DNA from: Hyaloraphidium curvatum SAG 235-1
Taxonomy: Eukaryota; Fungi; Monoblepharomycota
DNA: 64,000 nt
Direction: 5' to 3'
Assembly: GCA_025558095.1 (NCBI GenBank)
Contig: JAIVFI010000009.1
Span: 496,001-560,000 of the forward strand
Part shown: positions 6,717-59,171 of the stretch, in pieces
Numbering within the stretch: the first letter of the stretch is position 1
Layout of the letters: every line of letters begins with the position of its first letter
The notes under the pieces: model-generated
What the model saw: only the letters and a program-made list of their open reading frames with translations
Database searches by the model: none
What the model was told of the DNA's origin: nothing
Position numbers and translations under genes: made by a program

Positions 6717-9700
6717 TCACGGCTTCTTCTGGAAGAAGTCGCTGACCGAGAGCTGCGAGGGGTCCTTCTTGCCTGCCGCTTTTTTCGCCTTGCCCTCGGC
6801 TTGCCTCTTGCGCGAGCGCTGCATGCTGATGGTTCCGTCCGCGACGGTGCGGGCGTCGACGATGGTCTGGTAGCCGAGGTAGTCGAGGTTCTCCAGCTCG
6901 AGGTACGTCTCCTCCCCGAGGTTGCGCGCGATCGACCCGAAGGCAAAGATGGTCAGAAAGTCTTTGTCCGCCTCGAAGCGTCGGGGCTTCCGCTTCGCGA
7001 CGAAGCGCCCAGCCCGCGCGAGGCCTTCGACCATGCCCTTGCCGAAACCCGACTTGAGCGCGTGCTTGACCTCGACGACCTCGTCCGTGTCACCAATCTC
7101 GTCGGCGAGGCACTTGATTTTGATGAAGAAATCTATGACCGGCTCGTAGATGTCGACGAGGTAGAGGGCCTGGAGGTGGCCGGCGGCCTGCAGTTCGCGC
7201 AGAAGGGAGCCGAAAGTGCTCGCGACCTGCGCAAAGTTGATGACCAGGATGCCGTCGTGGTTCGCCTCGGCCTCGTCGTCCAGCGCGGCGGCGAGGAGGT
7301 CGGTGACTGGCACGAAGTCAAAGCGCACGCCGGGGATGGAAGGCAGGCACGTCCACCCCTTGGTGAACTTCTTGATCGCGCAATTGGACCCGCCGCCCTG
7401 CGGATGCGGCGAATGGCCGTTCTCGAGCGAGCCCGGCTTGTCCTTGCGCATGGTCCGGCAGAAGTCCTTGTTGCACGTGAGGCACTGAACCAGCTCCGCC
7501 GTGGGCGAGTACGGCCGGAGCTGGTTGTGCCGATCGAGCTTCATGACGGCCGTCGAGACGATGCGCTGCGCCTCTGCTTCGTCGAGCGCGGTAAAGTCAG
7601 GCTCCGGCCCCGACATGAGACCGAGTCGGTACGCGGACGTCGCGGCGCCGATCTTGATCCGCCGCGCGAGGGTCGCGGAGAGCGCGGCCTTCATCTCCCG
7701 CAGGCGCGCCTCCTGAGCAGCTTCCGGCAGAGCGTCGTAGTCCGGGAAGGCCTCGAATGCCATGTACCGGAGACGTGTCCGCGACGCGCGCTCGGCCCGA
7801 TCGGCGGCCTTTTCCACCGCCTCGCGCACCTCCTTTGCCTCGGCTTTCTTTTCTCCGACGAACGTCATCTTCTTGACCGCTTCTTTGTCGCCGAAACGAA
7901 GCTGGGTCAGGATCTCGGCGGCCTCGATCGCCGCCTCGATCTGTGCAGGCGAGGCGTCACCGAGATCGTCCTCCTCGCTCTCCGCCGTCCGGCTCGCGCT
8001 CTCGGCCTCGGCCGTGATCGCATCGCAGCGGTGGTACTGCTTCCAGTCCGCAAATGTCGACTCGAATTCCGGCCGCAGAGAGGAGAGGTTGACCTTGTAG
8101 TCGGGCAGGCCGTGGGGAGCGACGGACTCGTCGGCCGACAAGCCTTGGTGGAGCTCTGCGAATGGCGCGGCGATCAGCCGAGCTCCTCGAGGCATCGATC
8201 GCGATGTGCTCACCGGCACCGCCTCCCTTGGGAACGTTCCACCAGGGCCTGAGCTCCTCGGCGCGCTCGAGCATCCGGGGCCCAAGCGACTCGTCCCACA
8301 TCGTGCGGGCCTTCTTGAGCACCTCTTCGATGCCGAGGAGCTTCCGCATGCGCAGGATGTAGTCCGTGAGCTCGATCGTGCACCTGTCCAACTCGAAGAA
8401 GTAATCAAGCGCAAGGACGCGAGCCGCGCCTTGGGCGTAGCCGACGATCGCCGTGTCGAGGAAAGCGGCGGCAAAGAACGAGCGATTCTGCAGCTCGTCC
8501 AGCGTCACGGTGGCGAACCGGGGCTTGCCCATCCAGCTCTCGTTGCCCCACCCCGGAGCCGAGACGATTGAAAAGATCTCGGTCGGGCGGTCGCCGTAGA
8601 AGAGGAGGCCCAAGACGTCTGGGTACGGCTCGAGCTTGGCGAAAAAGTCGCGCTTCGCGGCTTTCTGGTCGGCAATGGAGATATGCGCCGTTGGGAGCTG
8701 GGGGCAGGGAATCTTAGGGTACTCGTCCAGCGCGAGCGGAGGCTGGTGCCCCATGAGCTCATTGTTCGTGGCGAAGGAACGGCTCAGGTAGCTCTCGTGA
8801 GGCTGTCCGGGGTTTCGCACGGCCGAGCAGTCGGCGCCGCTGTTGAGCGCGAGGAAAGGCGGGGAGTTGTACGCGGATACAAAGAGCTTGGCACGCATCG
8901 TCCGCAGAATGTCCAGTTCGGCATTCTTCGCCGGGCGCGGAAAAAACGGAATCTTGGAGTAGGGGCTGGAGTTGCCGGCGTGAGAACCGCCCATCAGCTT
9001 GACGATGAAGATGAGCGCCTCCTCGGCCGGGTTGCTGAGCGCGGGCGAGGCGATGCCGTGCCCGAGGCAGCGGCACTCGGCCATCTCGCCGTACATCTTG
9101 AGCTTGCCGTGAGGGGGGTACGCGTTGCGCCGCACAAGGTCGTCCGTGACCCCCATGTAGGGGTGCAGGCGGTCGTCCGAGGGGAAGCGGAGGTCGTCCC
9201 CGGACGGCTTCAGCACCGCGAACTGCACGCCTTGATCGAAGAAGCTCTTGCCGTAGAGGCACATAACGCATTGGACACCGGCTTCGTGGACCTTGGCCCG
9301 GTCCAGGACGAGGTGCTCGTTCCCGGGCGTCAGGTCGACGTACTTGATGGCCCTGAGCTCGGCGAGAACGCAGATGCCGGCCTGCAGCCGCGCAAGAGGG
9401 ATTGCTGCCTCCTTGGCGTACTGCTCCAGCTTCGCGAGGAAGTACTGGTAGATGTTGATCTCAAGACCGGCTGCAGTACGTGGTAGCGTCAGTTGCGGCC
9501 GAGAGCGCCGATCGCGGCAAACACGAACTGGGAGAGGAATCGTCGCCAGATCCAAAGAGATTCTTGGGCAAAGAACTCGAGCCGTAAGTAGGAAGACGCG
9601 CGGTATCAGTCCGCGGCTGGAGAGGGACAGCGATCAGCTCGGGCTGCGGAGGCAAATAAAGTGGAGGCGTTCCTCGACCAACCTTTTTCGAGTTGGGAGA

Positions 9701-40131: not shown

Positions 40132-41802
40132 ATGGGTGTAGGATTCCGCGTTCCCCGGCACTCTGGCGCCCCGCTGACCTTTCCTTCGAACATCAGGGCG
40201 GAGACCTCAACTTGAAGAGTGAGTCTCGCTCGGTCTCCGTGGCCTGGGACCTTCTCTGACCACGGTGTCCCGCAGAGAGCTGGCATCCTGCCACGCTTCG
40301 CAACATCGAGAAAGTATGGCAGACGGAGCAGAAGGCCGCGGCCGAGAAGCGCAAGGTGGACCAGCTGCGCAAGGAACTGGAGGAAGAGAGGCAGAAGGAG
40401 GAGCTGAAGAAGCTCCACGCGGCAGCCAGCGGAAAGTGCGTTCCCCGTTGCTGCGCACCGCCCCCACCGTACTAACCCGCTTCCGGCCTTCAGAAAATAC
40501 CAAGAAAAAGTCGACTGGATGTATTCTTCGGGGCCGATGGGGTCCGGAGCTACGCTGGCGGATGAGCGCGAGGAGTTCCTGCTCGGCCGCAAGAAGGTGG
40601 ACAAGATTGTGGAGCAGGGGACCAAGGTCGAGGAGCTGAACCCGACGACGTCGACGGCGCACGCGCGGACGGGCAACTCTGTTTACGGTGCCACCGCCAA
40701 TACCCTGCGCGACATGCAGTCCAAGATCCGGGACGACCCTCTGCTGATGATCAAGAAGCGCGAGCAGCAGGCCATCGAAACGACGCTGGCCAACCCGCTG
40801 CGCGTCAAGGAGATCAAGGAAAAGGTGGAAAAGACCAAAAAGGAGAAGAAGGAGAAGAAGAAGCGCCGGAAGGACTCGGACTCGGATTCTGACGACGGCA
40901 AGCGCCGCCGCAAGCGATCTCGATCTCGCTCGAGATCGAGATCGCCTGACAGGAGGCGGGAGCGGAGTCTTGACAGGCGGGACAGCGACCGCAGGCGGGA
41001 GCGGTCGCCCGAACGGGATCGCAGGCGCGAACGGTCGCCTTACGGCCGGGACGGACGGCGGGACAGGGAAAGATCCCCGATTGACAAGCGGCGCCGCTCT
41101 CCCGAAGATCGAAGGCGCTCGCCGGACGATCTGCGCCGCCCCTCGCCGCATGATGCGCGGAGGCGTTCGCCGGACGATGCACGGAGGCGGTCGCCCGAGG
41201 ACTGGCGCCGCAGGTCGCGTTCGCCGAGACGCGACGGTCGTCGTTCTCCGGTTCGCCGCGGTCCGAGCCCCGGTGGCTCGGGAGACAGCGGCGGCGACAG
41301 GCGCGACAGCTATCGGCGTATGGAAGGCTCTCGCGTGGAGAGGGACGGCTTTCGTGGAGAGCGCGAGAGGGATTTCGGCCGCCGAAGCCCCCCTCGTTCG
41401 GACTACCGCGCAAACGGATACGCAAACGGACGCGAACGGCCCGTCAACGGACACGGGGCGCAGAACGGGCATCGCGATCCGCCCCGGGACCCCGAAGCGG
41501 AGAAGAAGGCCAGGGAGGAGAAGCTGAGGCAGATGATGGAGGATGCCGAGGAAATGGACACGCAACGCGAAGTGCGCGTGCAGGAGATGGCCAAGGAACG
41601 GGCCGCCGAGGAGGCACGGGACGCGGCGGAGAGGTCCAAGAGGCTCAAGGAGAGCTCGGGCTTTGCGGGCACCTCGGGCAGCGATGCGGGCTTCCTCAAG
41701 GGCATCCAGTCCAACATTGTCTCCGGCGGTGCACACTCTGCCGCCGATCTCATCCAGCGGCGCCGCAACAATCGCCAAAGGGACGATAGTGACTTCCTCT
41801 GA
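40132..41802 (+). CDS. CWC25: Pre-mRNA splicing factor Cwc25
   Basis: Spliced N-terminus MGGGDLNLKKSWHPATLRNIEKVW; DWMY, EEFLLG, KIRDDPL.MIK; RS-rich region. Confidence 0.93.
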
Positions 41803-43089
41803 TGATCGAAGGTCGGTTGGCGAGCGCATCGAGATGCCCGGCACCAGCGGAGAGACATTATTTCTGTTGTGCAATTGTATGCATTGGTCGATCTAGATTT
41901 TCCACGTCGCCTTGGCCTCGATCGCGGTAGCCTGTTGGCGCCCGCCCCCTTTTTGGCCAGCGCTGGCCGGAGCGCGCCCACGGGCGACTTTTGTTTTTGA
42001 TTACCTGGGGATTGAAAAATCTATTAAGGAGAATAATGTTTACTGACCCGAATCCGGAGCCCGTTTCCACGCCATTTTGCGCGATTCTGGCCCATTCCCG
42101 GCTCTCCTGGCGCGTCTCGAGACCTCCCGATTGCCTCCCTGGTGCTCGATGTGGAGTTCTGCGGCGCCGGGGTCCAGGACTTGGTGCTCTTCCCGGACCT
42201 TGCGCGGAGTCGCCTCGCGGGCTGCAGTCCTCCTGGAAACACGGTTATCCGATGATTTTATCTTTTCTATGGAGCAGTTGGCCAGTGGAACCTGAAGCAA
42301 CGCGTTCCCGGACTCTTGGGGCACGGAAAACCATGCACATCTCCTCGCTGTGACGCAACGCGGGTGCCTTCGAGCACCGCGCGCCGAGAGCACGTTTGGG
42401 AACCTTTAGAAACCTCAGGTACGGGCGGAATGGGCCGCGTCGCTCGTGTGCTGCAGGATTTGGCCGGCTCGAAGTTTGTCGCGCTCGCCCTTCGAATGTG
42501 CTCATTTCTTGGCTCTTCGCTCCGTCGGATGTTCGTTGGAGGAAGCTCTTTCAGCGTGTCACGTGGATCTTATGGCGGGCTCGCTGCTCACGGACTGTCG
42601 ACGCTCGAGACGCGCTACGCGCCGTTGGCGCGATCTACCTGTTGGAATCAAGCGCAACGGGTTCTTTGGTGAAGAGAGCAAATGTCGTTTTGATTGCTTT
42701 TGTTTGGGGCTTCACGCGAGGGACGCTTGGTCCCCTGGTCACCTCAGATGTGGCCAACTTTGCGCCCACACTTCAGAACCCCCTCCCGAGAAGCGGCTGG
42801 TTGCCGAAGATGGAGAACACAACATGCAGGATTGCCGATGCCATGTGGACGAGCAGCTCCGTGGCCGATGGTGACCTGTCTGCCTCCTCGTGTACGTTTC
42901 CCGCAAGACCATCTCGATTTCGCGGGCTTGGCATCAAAGACGGAATCAAATGAATGGAAATGACTGCTTGAAACGCAGATAAGGATGCAGTAATGTCGAG
43001 GAAAGGATTACAAGAGGATATGGTCTATCTTGGCATCTGCCCCGTCCTCCGCGCCTCCCCACCCCTGGCACAGATCGTGAACGCCCCGT

Positions 43090-44143
43090 TCACGTTTCCA
43101 GTCTTGCCATTTGCTCCGCAACCGCCGCTTCGAAGCTACCGCCGTCCCTGGAGGAGAAAAACTTGATCGACTTGATCGTCGCCTTGACCAAGTTCCCGTT
43201 GGTTCTCAGCTTTCCTGGGTTCCGATGATTGACGTTCACGGAGTGCTTGGAAAGCAGATCCGCGTACTTCCGCGGCTCCCGTTTTTGCCCTTTCCGAAGA
43301 GCTGACAGGTGGAAGGCGGCAAGCAAGAGGAACTGCTCTCTCTCAGCCGGATGGTCCACGATATTCAACGGTGAAGCTTTCCCGTTCGAACGGGCGCGTC
43401 CGACGAGGTCACTGGAGCTGAACGAAAGGCGTCGCGTGCCGTCAGGCATGGTCGCCTCGAACTGCGTCCCGAACGGGGAGTGGAGCGAGACACCGATGCC
43501 GCGGCGCACTCGCTGAGCAACGGAAGTCTTGGTCCGTTCGCGAACCTAAAATGAACAATGATTAGAGGTGCTACGTCTTCAAAAGACGGGGAAAGCTCGC
43601 CTGTTCGCGCTCAAACTGTGCCATGAGCGAGTTCATCGCGAGTGACAGCCACGAAGTAGCCGACGGCGCCGAGCCGCTCCAGAAGAAGGTCAGCTCGGGC
43701 TGGTTGACGCAAACGAAGGATTTTCGGGCCTGGGTGAGCTCCTGAATGTAGCTGTGGGTCGCAACCATGTCGCGAGACAACCGGTCCAGCCGGACGACGA
43801 CCAGGCCGGCGTAGTCGTTCGAGGCGAGCAAGGAGACGAATGCAGCATGCAATTCCTTCCGTTCGAACGCCCCAGGCCCCTTGGGCAGTGCCCCGCTGGC
43901 CAGTTCTTCGTGCACCGCGACGACAATGTCCCCGCGCGCGGTTGCCCAGTCCCGGATGATCCCGATCTGATCCACGAGCGACAGATTGTCGCTCCCGTCG
44001 TCCAGCGACTTTCTGACGTAGGCAATCCAGCGCAGGCCTCGCCCAGATCCGAGCTGGGCCGCCGAGGCATAGGTTCCGAACTTTCCAACGAGCGAAACGA
44101 GGTGGGACACGTCCAGCGCGTTGGAAGCATGCTGGGGCTCCAT
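43090..44143 (-). CDS. Serine recombinase (resolvase catalytic domain plus recombinase-like DNA-binding domain), 332 aa, one GC-AG intron
   Basis: AYVRKS (nucleophile Ser), SL..Q, E.ASG, ER.EL, VVRLDRLSR; helix E AQFEREQ|VRERTK restored by intron 43600-43546; SPFG, P.ERE, ADLL, TIKSI in exon 2. Confidence 0.9.
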
Positions 44144-45962
44144 CTCCGCCCAGAAGGACAATCAGCGGCCCGCAATGAAGCAGGAGAGGGCCAAATGCAA
44201 GCTCGATCGGGATGAGGAGACGGTGGCGGGTCGGTTTCGGTCCCTGAAGCGCGACAGACGTTCCGCACGAGAGACAGGGGTACCAGAGCGTCACACACAC
44301 GAACTGAGCCCGCAACCGGCTTGAACATGAGCGCGAGCGACCATAGACGGGCCGGAAAGTGAGGAGGAAGGGGTTCAAAGACGTCAGACAAGGGGTTCGA
44401 ACAGGAGCTTCGCGGCACCTACATCGCGAGGCCCCCAAGCACTGTACAGCCGTTGGCTGCCCCAACGGAGGCACCGAGGATCTTTTTCCGGTCCAGATAG
44501 GAGCGAGAATGGGGGAGAACACGGCCGTTGGTCAGGATTCGTGCCACGAAACGGCGGAGCACGAACCGACGGGGAAGGAATGTTCCGATGCGCCGCCGTC
44601 CAGAGGCAGCAGGAAGCAGACGACACGGCCGCTGGACGTCCGGCTTGGTGCTCTCTCGTGGCACCGGTCGGGTCTCCAGCCATCGCTATCGGAAACCGAG
44701 CGGAGTTCGGGGGAGTCTATCCAAGGGCTCCCTTGGATAGACTATCTGAGACCCGCCGCCGAACCGCGATCTTGGAACTTCACTACACGCTATGCTAGTG
44801 CTCGGATCTCCTTCCCGAGACCAACTAGGATAGAAGAGATGTTGTACTGCCCTCCCTGGGGAACTCAAGGCCAGTCATTTGCTATTCAGGTCGCAGGACC
44901 GCCGAACGTGAGCGAGCGTCTCGAATTCACGTCCCGTCGAGCCTGGTGGGGAAGGGACGATATGGAGGAAACGCCCAAATCCCGACAAGTGCTAATCACA
45001 TTTACATGCGTGGTTTGGGAGCGCAAGAAGAGCTCCGCAGGTCTCATTCACTCTGGGCCGGGCTTGACAGCTGCACACTTGAATGGACGTCCGGCATCTC
45101 GTCAATGCCGAGCAGCAAGATGCTCGAGGGTTCTAACGTACCATACATTGTTTAATAAAGTCATTTCGATGGATGATGGCTTTCTTCCATCCTCTACTGG
45201 TAAGCGAGCGCCGCCGGAGCTCCATGCATGGCATGCTCAAGTTTGGGACCTCGCGGACCCTCCGCATGAGTACGTGAAGTTGTCCAGAGCTGTGAGGCAT
45301 TAGAACTGCATAAGAATACGCGATCTGTTGCAAGGCCGCGTCGATTGAGCTGCCTGTGCGTGAACGCGGGCGGTCGGCGCGGACCCATTTTGGCCGATTT
45401 TGAGCCGTTCCCGAGCCATCCCGCTCACAAAACGCTCTGCAGCACTGCGAGGCGTGCCGATTTCTCAAGTAGTAGTATGAAAGCGTCGAATTCGGCCTGC
45501 ATCTCAATTTCGGTCCGGAGCACCTCGGGGACCCAGACCCCCCCCCTCGTCGGTGCAAATCGACGCCGATGGCGCGCAACCACGCACCAAACCCGGTCTG
45601 CTCCGCGTAATGCGCTGACTCGATGTATATAAGTGCGTAGAAGCTAGAACGGCTACCGGCCAGCGATTTTCGCTTGGTGTAGGTGGTCCAGCAGGTCAAG
45701 ACTAGCCGGTCCGACGCCCTCCCCCGATGTAGTGCCACTTTGCGCCGGTGTGTCGAGCTCCTCAATCCTGGCATCAAGCACATGCCTTTCTGTGCATCGC
45801 ATCACCTCTACGATGGCCGCTGGAGCCGATCCAATCACATCTCTGGCCACATCCGAGCACGTACGATCGCCTTCCGGGTCCGTGTTCACCAGGACGGTCA
45901 ATGGGGACTTCAGATGAGTTGCCCTGCTTCAATTCCACAATCAGATACATGAAACCGATCTA

Positions 45963-48900
45963 TTACTTTGGGAACTCCGTCACAAGAACCACCTTCAACG
46001 CCTCGTAGGCTTTCAGACGGGGGCCACGCAGCGTGGCATCCTTGGCATCAAGGAGGTCGAGAAACTCTCCCTCCAGGTAGGCCCAGTCGGGACCTCCATC
46101 TTCCGCGCGGCGCGTGCCGTAAGCGGGGATGGTAATCTTGCGCTGCGTGTCGTCGCTACGGCGAAATCCATCATCGCAAAGGCCCAGCCGATGGACATGA
46201 GCAGCCCGGCATTTCTCCTCCTTGAGCTGCCCGCAGCGCCGACATAGCTGAGCTTCATCCTTTGGGGCATGCCCTCGCACCTTGGGCTTCGCGGGTTCCA
46301 TGGCCGAAACAGCAACTTCCTGCAGGGTCAACGAAGGAGCGACCTGTCGGGCCAACTGACGTTAAACCACCAGCGCGACAGCAGAGAGAAGCCGGTATGC
46401 CGCTCACCAAAACAGTCGAAGCACCTTGGACGGGCTTCTGGGCCACATGAGCGAAGGCAGCGAGGAGGGCCTCGGCCCAAGCCTCTTTCGAGATCTCGGG
46501 CGGCAAGTGCAGGGGCCTCGGCACGTGCTCGAGCAAAGCGGGCCCAGCTGCCAATGTGGAAGCATCGGGTAGAGCCAGAGACGATGTTGTCCCAGGCGCG
46601 GGCGGCATGGCCCGCTTCTTAGCGGCCGGAACCGACGTCGAGGCCGGCCGCGGTGCCACCGGCGAATCTGCCCGTCCCTGAACCAAATCCTCACGTTTCC
46701 GCTTGCCGCTCAAGGCCATTGCACCGCTTGACGGCTGAAAGGCGACGGGCAAGGGCGCCGGCGTCCTGCAAAAGACGAGGGATGAGCTCAGAAGCCGAGA
46801 TCCGAAAATGGCGTCCACCCACTCCAATACAGGCTCCACAGGCCGGTTTAGAGCCTGCACGGGCGCGGAAGAGAGAGAAGGAACAACGGGAACCTCCAGC
46901 ATGTCTTCCTCCATAGGAGACGAAAGAGGCTGGCTTGCAGCGGCAGTAGAGGCAGCCTTCGGCGACATTTGGCTCGAAGGTCGGGATGGAGACAAAATGA
47001 CCGGCGAGAACAAGCCTGAGGTGGCTACAACGGCGGACCCGAGCTAAAGAACGCCGACATGTTGAGTAAACCATGAATCCACGCTATCGCAATAACCAAC
47101 CTCGGCAAGAGTGCGCTGAAAGTCGGCCTTGATGCCGTAGTTCGGCGCGGCTCTACCACGAGCTTTCGGAGACGGCGACGGCTTGTGCGAAGGACGACTT
47201 TTCGGAGTGAATCCGCGAGGCGAGGCGGGCCGCGCCTTCGGGACAGCCGGATCCTTTTCCCTTTCGGCGACGTAGGCCTGCTGGTCCCGGATCGCCTTCC
47301 CGGCTTGCCGTGCTTCCGCCGAGGTGACGGCACGAATCTCAAAACACTCGTGATCCTCCAGAAGCGGGTTGCATTGTGCAGGGTGACCATTCTGGCGAGC
47401 CAAGCGGTTCCGAGCTTCCAGCATCTGGCAAAGAGCCGGATTCCTGCCCAACTGCTGGGCGTAAAAGTCGCCGAATTTGATGCGCAACACGGTCAGCATG
47501 TAATCGAGATCGAAATGGTCAATCTCCTGCAGGATGGTGTCCTCGAGCTTCGCGTGGCGGCCGAGCCAGTCCTGCAGAAGCCGAAAATAGCCCTCGAGAC
47601 GATTGCTTCCCCTAGCAACCATCACTGAGCCGTCTGCCGCGATGTAGAACAAAATCTCTGGATCGTCCAAACACCCCCTTTCCAGGTGCACTCGAGCGTT
47701 TGCCCAGTTCTTCTCGAACACCTCGACCTTCTTTGGAGGAAGACCGCCGAGGTACCGAAGAGCTTCGTTCTTAGCGGCGTCGAAGGCCTTGACGGCTTCC
47801 TCGCGCGGCAGCATCGGCTGCGGCGTCTTCTCGCCGCTGGGGAGCTCAACTCCCGGGAACTGAATGGAACTCCAAACGATGCCGATGATCTTGTCCTTGA
47901 CAAAATCCGTGACCCCGACGTCCTCGCAAATCCGTTGCACCCAGTGGAAATGGTCGAGACGTACGACCACGAGATCGCCAAACACAGCCTTCACGAGTGG
48001 GGCTAAAGAACCCGGCGAGCCACAGCACCGGTCCACTTGGAGCACGATGACCAGAGTCCCCGGCTCCTCAAAGGCGCCGACAGATTTCCCCGAATCGAGC
48101 TTCTTTCCGTCGATTCCACGGCCCGCAGCCTTCTGAGCCCGCAAAGAGTTACGAAGAACCTCTAGGCCGTGCTTGGCTGCGTCGTCGCCCTTGTTCCGGG
48201 CCATGTACTGCGAACGTCGTCAGAAGTCCCGCTGCATGGGCAGCGCCGAGCGGCTCACCGCGCCAAGAGGAGTACCAGTCGCGGTGATGTACTTGATCAG
48301 CTGAGGTTTGCTGCTCATGGACTCGGCCGCCACGCGGCCGCCGTTCGCCTTTGCAGCCGCATCCTTCTCGGCATCCGCGGCAGCACCGCCGTCAGCATGC
48401 TTGCTGGAGTTGAGGGCCTTGTGGCCCCCATTCTCCTCGTCGTGCACGTAAGCTTGGTGCAGTGCGGTCTTTTCCAGTCCGTCCTGCGCAATGTTCCGGC
48501 CTGCGCGGCGGAGATGAGCCAAGCAGCGAAACCAAATCCGTTCCGCCAGAACCCACAGTCAGCCTGGTACTGATACGAGTGGAAAAGAAGGTCGCCGTAT
48601 CGGTTCCAAACTGCTTCGTGTAGACGAGCCACAAAGGCGGCGTCGATCACATCCCCGGCCATTCTGACGCCAAGTCAACACGCAGGCGAAGGCGCAGCCC
48701 GAATCGCGGCCCAACTCACGAGAATTCGTCCTCCATTGACTCCTGGATCGACTGCGGCTTCTTCCCGCTCTGCCGGAAGAGGCCGGCGAACGTCGGTACG
48801 GTCGTGCCGTCGGAGGGCCCCGCCTGAGAAGGTGCCGAGTCGTTTTCGGCCGAGTCTGATCTCACGACAAAGGAATCCATGCTCGTTTGTTTGGATCCCG

Positions 48901-49979
48901 AAGAGTCTATGGGAACGGAGTCACAGCGTGTCCTCACGATGCCACACAAAAGGTTACCTGAAGAGAAGAATGCGCTGGTCGTCTCCGCATCCGGCATGGG
49001 GCCATGCTTCCCGTGGTGTTGAAGGTGCAGCGCGACGACGTGATGTTCGGCCTCCAGGTCGGCTGGAACCGAGATGTCACGAAAGGGCAAGAACCAGTTC
49101 AGAAAGAGCCGTACCGTTCAGGATCTTGGCCGCCATGCCCGGCCCGCACTCGTTCACCAGGTTGTAGACCTTCGAGAGGAACGACATGTGCACGTACGAG
49201 TGGCCGACCCGTTCGTAAGGGAACACTGCCGACGAATGATTAGCAAGGTCGACAAGATCGATCAGGGAGCGGTTCCTACCGACGTAGCGCAGGTCCGCGG
49301 GAATTCTGTCGAGCAGGTTGTGGGCACCAATCTGGAAGGTGCACTTCCCCGCCTTGGCTTCCCCAAAGTTCTCGCAAACGTATCGCCGGGGGCAAAGAAG
49401 TTCCAACTCTCCATGGGGCCCACGCATGAGGAAGAGATCTTGAACCCAAGCACTGGGCTTCAGCTTCAATCCGCACGTCGGACAAATGAGCCGCGCCAAG
49501 TCCGGGTAGCCCTCCCAGGGAGAAAGGATGAAGGTCGGCCGAAGCGTCACGAGAGAATCCATTTCCGGGGTTCCCGGCCCGTTGAGGACCTTGAAAATCG
49601 GATCCCCTCCATCCCGGAGGACGAAGCGCTCCGGATGACGTCGTAGATCGAAGGGAAAAGGCTGGAGACCATGGGTGAACGGGGTAACCTTCTTCCCCGG
49701 CAACCTCCTCTTTTGGGCGGCCGAGAACTCGAGCTGGAAGGCCGTTCCGTGCTGAGGACGCCCTTCTGGAGGTGCCTCGCCCGCCGAAGCTTGTGGCTGC
49801 TGTCCGGCGGGCTCCCCTCCGCTTTCCGGCTGCCCGGCCGGCGGCGCTGCGGTCTTTGGCGGGCGACCGCGCTTCTTCGTCTGCTTTGGTGCGTCCGAAG
49901 CCTTCATCGCGGGGACCTTAGCCTTCTTCACGCCGCCAGAGACCTTCTTCGCGCCGCCCGTGTTCCGGTTCCGACCCAT
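45963..49979 (-). CDS. DUF6729-type DDE transposase-like protein (about 8 introns)
   Basis: AT-hook KKRGRPPK; F.LSP..CPTC..L...Y.C..C.F...L...P..LR..FP; putative catalytic NIAQDG (48481), QVDRCCG (48031), VRLDHFHW, RGSNRLEGYF (47593); C-terminal CRRC..H..C. Confidence 0.78.
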
Positions 49980-50295
49980 GCCTCCGCTGGCCCGAGAAGT
50001 CGCGTCGAGACGCGACGGTTCGGATCAGTTGGCCTCGTCTTCGGCGCCAGAGTCCTTCCTAGAGCTCAGACTGCCCTGCTTGCAGTCATTCCCGTCCAGA
50101 ATGTCCCCAGGGGATGCTTCAACAGAGGCCTCGTCTCCTCCCGGGGAGAGGAAGCTATAAACCGTCGCGACACGCGGGAAGGCGAGGCTCCTCGCGACAG
50201 TAGCGTTGATTCGAGGGCAGAGAAGGCTACGCCGACGCGCGTCTGGGACGGGGCCGGCGCGCAGGTGGCCTCTCAGGGGGTTTGGCCCGGTGGGG

Positions 50296-50362
50296 GAGGG
50301 TTGGGGAGGGTTGAAAGAGGGTTGAAGAGGGTTGAAGGAGGGTTGAACCGGGTTGAAGGGTT
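50296..50362. repeat. Seven GGGTT(GAA) units at about 10.5-bp spacing
   Basis: GGGTT starts at 50298, 50308, 50319, 50329, 50340, 50350 and 50358. Confidence 0.85.
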
Positions 50363-50699
50363 TGGTCTAGTAAACAGATCTATATCACGCCGCCCACGCC
50401 TATCAAAGCCTGTCATCTCCTCGGGCATCCCCCGCCCAAACTACCGGCGCCTGCGGCACGGGTTAGTTTCCTCCCGCCTTTTTGCGACAGGCGCCACCAC
50501 TTCCCGCGGCGGCCGTTGTTGCCGGAAGGGCACACGGCCGGGAGGTCGTGACGCCTATCGCGACGCCACTCTGTCCTCCCCACGCTTCAACCTCTCACAC
50601 ATATCTGTGCTGCTGCCCAATCAGGTCCCGTGCTGCCGTCGGCCATCCCTACCATCACCGGCTGCTTCGTAACCCGATCCGGGTGAGGACGCCGCCGCG

Positions 50700-58993: not shown

Positions 58994-59171
58994 TGACGCG
59001 TTCCCAAAAGGCCCAATGTCAATCGATCATCGCCGTTTCCGCTCGCTCGAGACGACCGTCAGGGACCTGGCGCGGCGGGCCGATCGCGTCGATCGCGCAC
59101 CGCCGCCCGTCACAACGTTCCACCGTCCGCGCGCGCTTATCTGTTTCCTGGGCAGGCGGTGGGCCTCCGCG

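Follow-up and report, generated by a model that had tools for sequence, protein, structure and literature searches.

An intron-bearing, integrase-like serine recombinase gene in a repeated 8.4-kb mobile element of the fungus Hyaloraphidium curvatum

We analyzed a 64,000-nucleotide stretch of the genome of Hyaloraphidium curvatum SAG 235-1, a fungus of the Monoblepharomycota (contig JAIVFI010000009.1, here C9, positions 496001-560000; hereafter "the window"), which is part of a 32-Mb assembly of 55 contigs. Encoded on the minus strand of the window (43090-44143; coordinates given without a contig name are those of the window) is a serine recombinase (SR) of 332 amino acids. The gene is interrupted by a short intron and lies within a repeated mobile element of 8,409 bp, downstream of a multi-exon gene on the same strand that is a candidate for a DDE-type transposase (Table 1). 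An original prediction, made from the sequence of the window, had reported a catalytically intact SR gene in a eukaryotic chromosome. The placement in a eukaryotic chromosome stands, but the gene is not a lone one: it is one of four copies, 99% identical and distributed over three loci, that are carried by the mobile element.

Table 1. Features of the element in the window and at its borders
Feature	Position	Strand	Description
Mobile element	41983..50391		8,409 bp, repeated
Left target-site duplication	41976..41982		7 bp, GCCCACG; identical heptamer at both element ends
Right target-site duplication	50392..50398		7 bp, GCCCACG
SR exon 1	43601..44143	-	181 codons, ends FEREQ; short N-terminal helix, catalytic domain, first half of helix E; PF00239 match
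SR intron	43546..43600	-	55 nt, phase 0, GC-AG; read from the sequence; used in public model P0001
SR exon 2	43090..43545	-	begins VRERTK; coding 43545-43093, stop 43092-43090; second half of helix E and recombinase-domain-like DNA-binding domain
Spacer between SR and upstream gene	44144..45962		most diverged part of the element; no recognizable gene
Upstream multi-exon gene	45963..49979	-	chain of minus-strand open reading frames, same strand as SR; candidate DDE transposase
386-amino acid open reading frame	47047..48204	-	VDRCCG...LDHFHW and GSNRLEGYF motifs
N-terminal open reading frame, 300 amino acids	49080..49979	-	AT-hook-like basic tract, Cys clusters; DUF6729 look-alike
29-nt direct repeat	42072..42100, partner 45385-45413	+	brackets the SR gene; 23/29 identical
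GGGTTGAA array	50308..50357	+	five repeats, 10-11-bp spacing, 34-83 bp from the right end

Gene structure, catalytic residues and fold of the recombinase

The reading frame of the SR opens with an ATG at 44143. The intron starts with GCGAGC, contains a branch-like CTAAT motif and ends with TTTTAG. Removal of the intron is needed to keep the reading frame, because an in-frame stop lies within it and the unspliced frame is an open reading frame (ORF) of 196 amino acids (43571-44161). Thus, we infer from the sequence that the intron is spliced in vivo. A protein deposited at NCBI (P0001, "Resolvase [Hyaloraphidium curvatum]", 332 amino acids) is exactly the spliced product, junction included, and the gene model is therefore already present in the public annotation; our full-length analyses are based on this protein. 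The gene is annotated, yet it is undescribed in the literature that we searched (full-text searches gave no article about serine recombinases of chytrids and none about DUF6729). Direct reading confirmed the predicted coordinates of the gene and of the 55-nt GC-AG intron, as well as the FEREQ-VRERTK junction. The further claim that intron removal rebuilds helix E also held up, as the exon junction is gapless in family alignments with intronless homologues across that helix. One substitution was found in the intron among the element copies.

Exon 1 matches the Resolvase family PF00239 (E 6e-13; 49.5 bits, with a cut-off of 23.3), and the motifs YVRKS, ASG and DRLSR are all present. In family alignments, Y42, R44, S46 (the nucleophile), S83, D120, R121 and R124 fall on invariant columns, and G84 is nearly invariant in alignment A1. 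The full catalytic set that had been predicted is thus present, and its residues are intact in all four gene copies.

The SR structure was modelled with AlphaFold from an alignment of 20 sequences, four rows of which look prokaryotic, with one confirmed large serine recombinase (P0027). The model has a mean predicted local distance difference test (pLDDT) score of 80. It comprises 36 low-confidence residues, then the catalytic domain, a helix at residues 162-195 (helix E) and a C-terminal part of about 135 residues of mixed strand and helix. The best Foldseek matches in the PDB are Bxb1, SPbeta SprA and PhiC31 (E 1e-9 to 1e-6 over 278-320 columns), all of which outrank structures that consist of the catalytic domain only. 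By VIA, residues 37-332 of the model align to residues 1-283 of Bxb1 (244 residues, Z 15.4), and the full-length model also aligns to SprA 8-298 and PhiC31 3-340. For the catalytic domain, the fold compares with those of TP901-1 and gamma-delta resolvase at Z 14-16.6, and the catalytic domain of TP901-1 integrase is the best profile match of the SR among solved structures. In the ESM Atlas, template modelling (TM) scores of 0.59-0.60 were obtained over 249-260 residues (root-mean-square deviation 4.4-4.7) with clusters in which 100% of members carry PF07508 and 98-100% carry PF00239. The C-terminal domain was modelled within the full-length protein, which limits how far the fold match of exon 2 can be read.

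Sequence models did not identify the C-terminal domain. Exon 2 alone has no match in Pfam (E up to 1; PF07508 included) or NCBIfam, the profile of the domain aligns to the recombinase domain of large serine recombinases with an hhalign probability of 0.6%, and the same profile has no match among PDB sequences. The predicted likeness of exon 2 to the recombinase domain of large serine integrases was therefore upheld by fold (Bxb1 and the atlas clusters) but not by the sequence model PF07508. Lacking is a zinc ribbon, as had been predicted: PF13408 is unmatched in the SR, and the protein ends at residue 332, which is the end of the recombinase domain. Full-length homologues (294-372 amino acids) end at the same place. 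No Pfam match was found in the SR to a C-terminal helix-turn-helix (HTH) domain of the PF02796 type, as in resolvases and invertases. Neither is the protein of the IS607 type, again in line with the prediction, with 18.3 bits to model NF033518 (cut-off 110) and no N-terminal HTH found. As modelled, the SR consists of a catalytic domain, a long helix E and a recombinase-domain fold, and it stops where a zinc ribbon would begin. It appears to be an intact, eukaryote-adapted enzyme derived from the large serine recombinase lineage.

The mobile element, its copies and their surroundings

The left end of the element starts GGCGA(C/T)TTTTTG and the right end finishes ATATCACGCC. Other full copies, 97-99% identical to that of the window, were identified at C4:366970-375128, C34:536627-545034 and C46:167224-175636. 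Contigs C34 and C46 overlap at 99.7% identity over 16.8 kb, element included, and therefore represent one locus. In total, four full copies occur at three loci, along with two shortened copies. The window copy is flanked by a perfect 7-bp duplication (Table 1) and the C4 copy by a different perfect heptamer, CCGGACC, so that perfect duplications are present at two of the three full loci.

Near the right end is an array of five GGGTTGAA repeats. The window contains six matches to this motif, with 1.7 expected, and five of them are in the array; no counterpart was found at the left end of the element. Given its helical spacing, the array is possibly a site of protein binding. The 29-nt direct repeats that bracket the SR gene were considered as a recombination site and rejected, since Markov shuffling of the element gave an equal maximum in 3 of 30 cases. 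ORFs in the spacer between the two genes have no Pfam match and show near-neutral substitution ratios, and in the C4 copy the spacer is shorter by about 280 bp (window 44857-45137; near C4:372226).

To the left of the element is a gene for the pre-mRNA splicing factor CWC25 (PF12542, E 3e-18; 40519-41802, plus strand), which looks intronless and encodes a long tail rich in Arg, Ser and Asp. The gene stops 180 bp short of the left border of the element and is 1.3 kb away from the SR gene. The composition of the SR gene is host-like, and bacterial-type promoter or terminator signals are not enriched. Both shortened copies run straight into (TTAGG)n at contig ends (C37:531140-531647 and C39:485037-485554). 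One is broken in the candidate DDE ORF just after the DHFH motif, and the other 350 bp from the left end of the element. The flanks of these two copies do not match, and thus they look like two independent chromosome ends that healed inside the element. They may mark the element as a place where chromosomes break. Bacterial contamination is excluded because the assembly is eukaryotic, the CWC25 gene adjoins the element, the composition is host-like, and copies occur on multiple contigs, some of them capped by TTAGG repeats. The earlier argument that an intron speaks against contamination is supported by these same observations.

One contig complicates the picture. In C46 (158860-184331), the sequence to the right of the element is 100% identical to the right flank of the window copy (to window position 59094) up to the contig end. 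In C46 the element thus has on its left the flanking sequence seen at C34 and on its right that of the window copy. A translocation through the repeat could account for this, as could a haplotype variant or a chimeric assembly. The 386-amino acid ORF of the C46 copy contains frameshifts and a TGA. This mixing of flanks shows that the assembly is unreliable across the element, and could be taken to mean that the locus itself is an artefact, whether of contamination, of a chimeric contig or of a wrong gene model. We consider such an artefact highly improbable. On either side, the window copy is bordered by unique eukaryotic sequence, and its target duplications match. In addition, copies of the element end in TTAGG telomere repeats, related intron-bearing genes occur in other chytrid genomes, and there is no enrichment of the bacterial-type signals noted above.

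Relatives, the putative partner gene and a proposed mechanism

An exhaustive HMMER search with P0001 retrieved 331 proteins at E up to 0.001, 30 of them at E up to 1e-10. The named close matches are all from zoosporic fungi (Chytridium lagenaria, Obelidium mucronatum, Rhizoclosmatium, Quaeritorhiza, Phlyctochytrium and the aphelid Amoeboaphelidium). In a quick, unrooted maximum-likelihood tree, 11 chytrid and aphelid sequences and 7 metagenomic sequences fall on one side of a branch with support of 99 (SH-like approximate likelihood ratio test, SH-aLRT), apart from 55 other SRs. By sequence, then, the SR groups in a clade of its own that is found, among named sequences, only in zoosporic fungi (chytrids and aphelids). 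No viral relatives were found in IMG/VR viral contigs.

The Hyaloraphidium genome encodes a second SR family, 38% identical to the first (annotated as P0011), which lies in a repeat of about 2.3 kb with 4-7 copies (C22:421396-423738, which is L014:684-3026; C9:336628-341290; C2:639917-641904). On the contig of the window this family occurs as a head-to-head inverted pair, and some copies are broken by stops. Upstream of the C22 and C2 copies are two large ORFs (L021:6150-7451 and 7968-8939) with no Pfam match. Beside the C22 copy is an unrelated, high-copy short repeat, a 271-bp sequence (C22:423743-424012, L014:3031-3301) found at 94-97% identity in at least 35 places in the genome.

The second family has a 74-nt intron (GTGAGT...AG) at the same codon position as that of the first (between ER-x-x and x-x-x-RT, phase 0). 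In an SR homologue of Chytridium lagenaria, a 41-nt intron (L034:15853-15893) lies three codons further downstream than in Hyaloraphidium; a second SR of that species (L035:10001-10987) is intronless. The introns of helix E differ between the copies of Chytridium lagenaria, and therefore were gained or shifted within the SR family.

Proteins of Batrachochytrium, Globomyces and Homolaphlyctis (P0013, P0016, P0020 and P0024; 600-1150 amino acids) contain two tandem SR C-terminal domains but lack a catalytic domain. As they look like products of ordinary annotated genes of the host, the DNA-binding module may have been domesticated there, and parts of the SR family would then have been recruited for other uses. 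Together with the broken copies of the second family, these proteins are what would be expected if the SR of the element were a passenger or a relic, either captured cargo that is drifting to loss or a gene en route to host domestication. The pattern of divergence points the other way. The SR coding sequences of the copies differ by 7 substitutions (about 0.7% divergence), 5 synonymous and 2 non-synonymous; in exon 2 the counts are 4 and 1. By our own binomial estimate, two or fewer non-synonymous changes among seven have a P of about 0.015 under neutrality. The rest of the element is 2-6% diverged, with 2-3% and a weaker synonymous bias in the upstream ORFs and about 5% in the spacer (25-28 substitutions per 500 bp), so that the SR is the least diverged part. 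Also against a passenger are the intact catalytic residues in four copies and the presence of the gene in multiple copies in a mobile element, rather than at a single syntenic host locus. We regard a passenger or relic as unlikely.

The gene upstream of the SR is the candidate for a partner enzyme. Ab initio intron joining of its ORFs gave too many candidates to fix one exon model. For the N-terminal ORF of 300 amino acids, the ESM Atlas feature score is 0.92, with 183 of 256 features shared with DUF6729 clusters. The look-alikes of the 386-amino acid ORF in the same atlas are MULE and DUF6729 clusters (0.94-0.86). The motifs of this ORF, which were read by eye, probably correspond to the second Asp, the [C/D]xxH and the SNxxE of Mutator-type DDE transposases. 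One of the SR gene models of Chytridium lagenaria includes, fused upstream of the SR, a part that weakly matches DUF6729. A gene beside another SR of that species shares the E-motif block with the 386-amino acid ORF (0 of 300 shuffles), although the match in the D/DxFH block is weak (p 0.04). BLAST found no match between the upstream gene and the Chytridium fusion protein (P0021), a third Chytridium SR locus has no homologue of the partner gene, and no Tn3 transposase was matched by Pfam among the upstream ORFs.

Strand exchange by serine recombinases takes place at a 2-nt stagger and creates no target duplication, whereas the staggered cuts of DDE enzymes do make duplications. The two perfect 7-bp duplications, which differ in sequence, therefore point to a staggered-cut enzyme, for which the upstream DDE-like protein is the candidate. 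We predict that this Mutator/DUF6729-like protein most likely cuts and inserts the element, producing the 7-bp duplications, and that the SR, encoded by the downstream gene, most likely has an accessory part, site-specific recombination at a site within the element. It might resolve cointegrates or dimers, excise a circle or bring about an inversion, by analogy with the Tn3 resolvase and with Gin of phage Mu. We put the chances at about even that the element is a two-enzyme DNA transposon of this kind, with a DDE-like protein that makes the duplications and an accessory site-specific SR.

Several observations weigh against this prediction. Regarding the partner, the upstream ORFs have no Pfam match at E up to 10 (MULE PF10551 included), two large-database searches found no sequence homologue of the gene, and six-frame genome scans with PF20499 (DUF6729) and PF10551 had no match there. 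The single-sequence AlphaFold model of the 386-amino acid ORF (pLDDT 40) is too poor for a structure search. The identity of the partner as a DDE enzyme therefore rests on the language-model look-alikes and the motifs. No homologue of the partner gene was found at the SR loci of Obelidium and Rhizoclosmatium, and the second Hyaloraphidium SR family is without a DDE-like partner gene. Regarding the element, its ends have only a 4-nt inverted match (GGCG) and no clear terminal inverted repeats, a 7-bp duplication is short for the Mutator type, and no matching duplication was found at the flanks of the C34 copy, the right flank of which is unique. Repeat scans of the element found no recombination site or res-like site.

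Some of these same observations would fit a different arrangement, in which mobility comes from the SR itself, as in TnpX/Tn4451 or IS607, and the SR moves either the whole element or a small nested module of its own. The second SR family lacks a DDE-like gene, SR genes of the clade are retained across chytrids in differing gene neighbourhoods, the 2.5 kb at the left that bear the SR are less diverged than the rest of the element, and clear inverted terminal repeats are missing, as in IS607. The perfect 7-bp duplications of different sequence at two loci argue against this arrangement, since SRs leave none. Moreover, no module boundary is supported (the 29-nt repeats being at chance level), and the SR is without the zinc-ribbon/coiled-coil domain, which in known integrases controls the synapsis of att sites. 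Mobility driven by the SR is thus improbable in our judgment.

If the two-enzyme prediction is taken to its full extent, the element could be the first transposon of a eukaryote to rely on two recombinases that differ in chemistry, with insertion by a DDE enzyme and resolution or rearrangement of the products by an integrase-type SR that is active in the nucleus without a zinc ribbon. We offer this stronger form as speculation that is more likely wrong than right. If true, it would mean replicative, cointegrate-forming or circle-forming transposition in a fungus, and a compact SR naturally adapted to chromatin and conserved across zoosporic fungi.

Comparison with known systems

The SR shares with the large serine recombinases (the integrases Bxb1, PhiC31, TP901-1 and SPbeta SprA, and TnpX and TndX) an N-terminal catalytic domain with its serine, a long helix E and the recombinase-domain fold. 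Unlike these, it stops at residue 332, where their zinc-ribbon/coiled-coil region begins, and neither PF07508 nor PF13408 is matched. In addition, its gene has a spliceosomal intron and is located in a fungal nucleus.

In having a candidate DDE transposase gene followed by an SR gene within an element that makes target duplications, the Hyaloraphidium element resembles the Tn3 family and phage Mu. In Tn3, the inverted repeats are 38 bp long and the duplications 5 bp, a res site is present, and the resolvase is small and carries a C-terminal HTH. In contrast, the element described here has no clear inverted repeats, has 7-bp duplications, and encodes an SR with a DNA-binding domain of the integrase type and a transposase candidate that is Mutator/DUF6729-like. 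By analogy, the resemblance to Tn3 and Mu would be one of function only and not of membership.

MULE and DUF6729 transposons provide the language-model look-alikes of the upstream gene and have in common with it the D...[C/D]xxH...SNxxE order of motifs. The element also shows target duplications, at two of its three full loci. They differ from the upstream gene and its element in that PF10551 and PF20499 are unmatched and long inverted repeats are absent from the element. The duplications of MULEs are usually 8-11 bp, not 7. We know of no MULE that carries a serine recombinase.

The eukaryotic SRs that have been published are of the IS607 type, such as the Lachancea kluyveri genes (PMC2715888) and those of Fanzor-associated elements (PMC3627910). 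TnpA of IS607 has a MerR-like HTH that is N-terminal to the catalytic domain and makes no target duplications (PMC6188088); the mechanism of this type has been described (PMC6188088; PMC4058570). The Hyaloraphidium SR is like the eukaryotic IS607-type SRs in that it is resident and duplicated in a eukaryotic genome with a bias toward synonymous changes. It is unlike them in its domain order, which is the opposite, and in the 7-bp duplications of its element. Thus, whereas eukaryotic SRs have so far been described as bacteria-derived enzymes of the IS607 type, that of Hyaloraphidium appears to be of the integrase lineage. What is new is a clade of intron-bearing, integrase-type SRs of zoosporic fungi that have no zinc ribbon, linked here to a transposon that duplicates its target. 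If the SR is active, it would show that serine site-specific recombination operates in fungal nuclei, the element would represent a new class of composite eukaryotic mobile element, and the enzyme would be a short, eukaryote-native recombinase to study for genome engineering.

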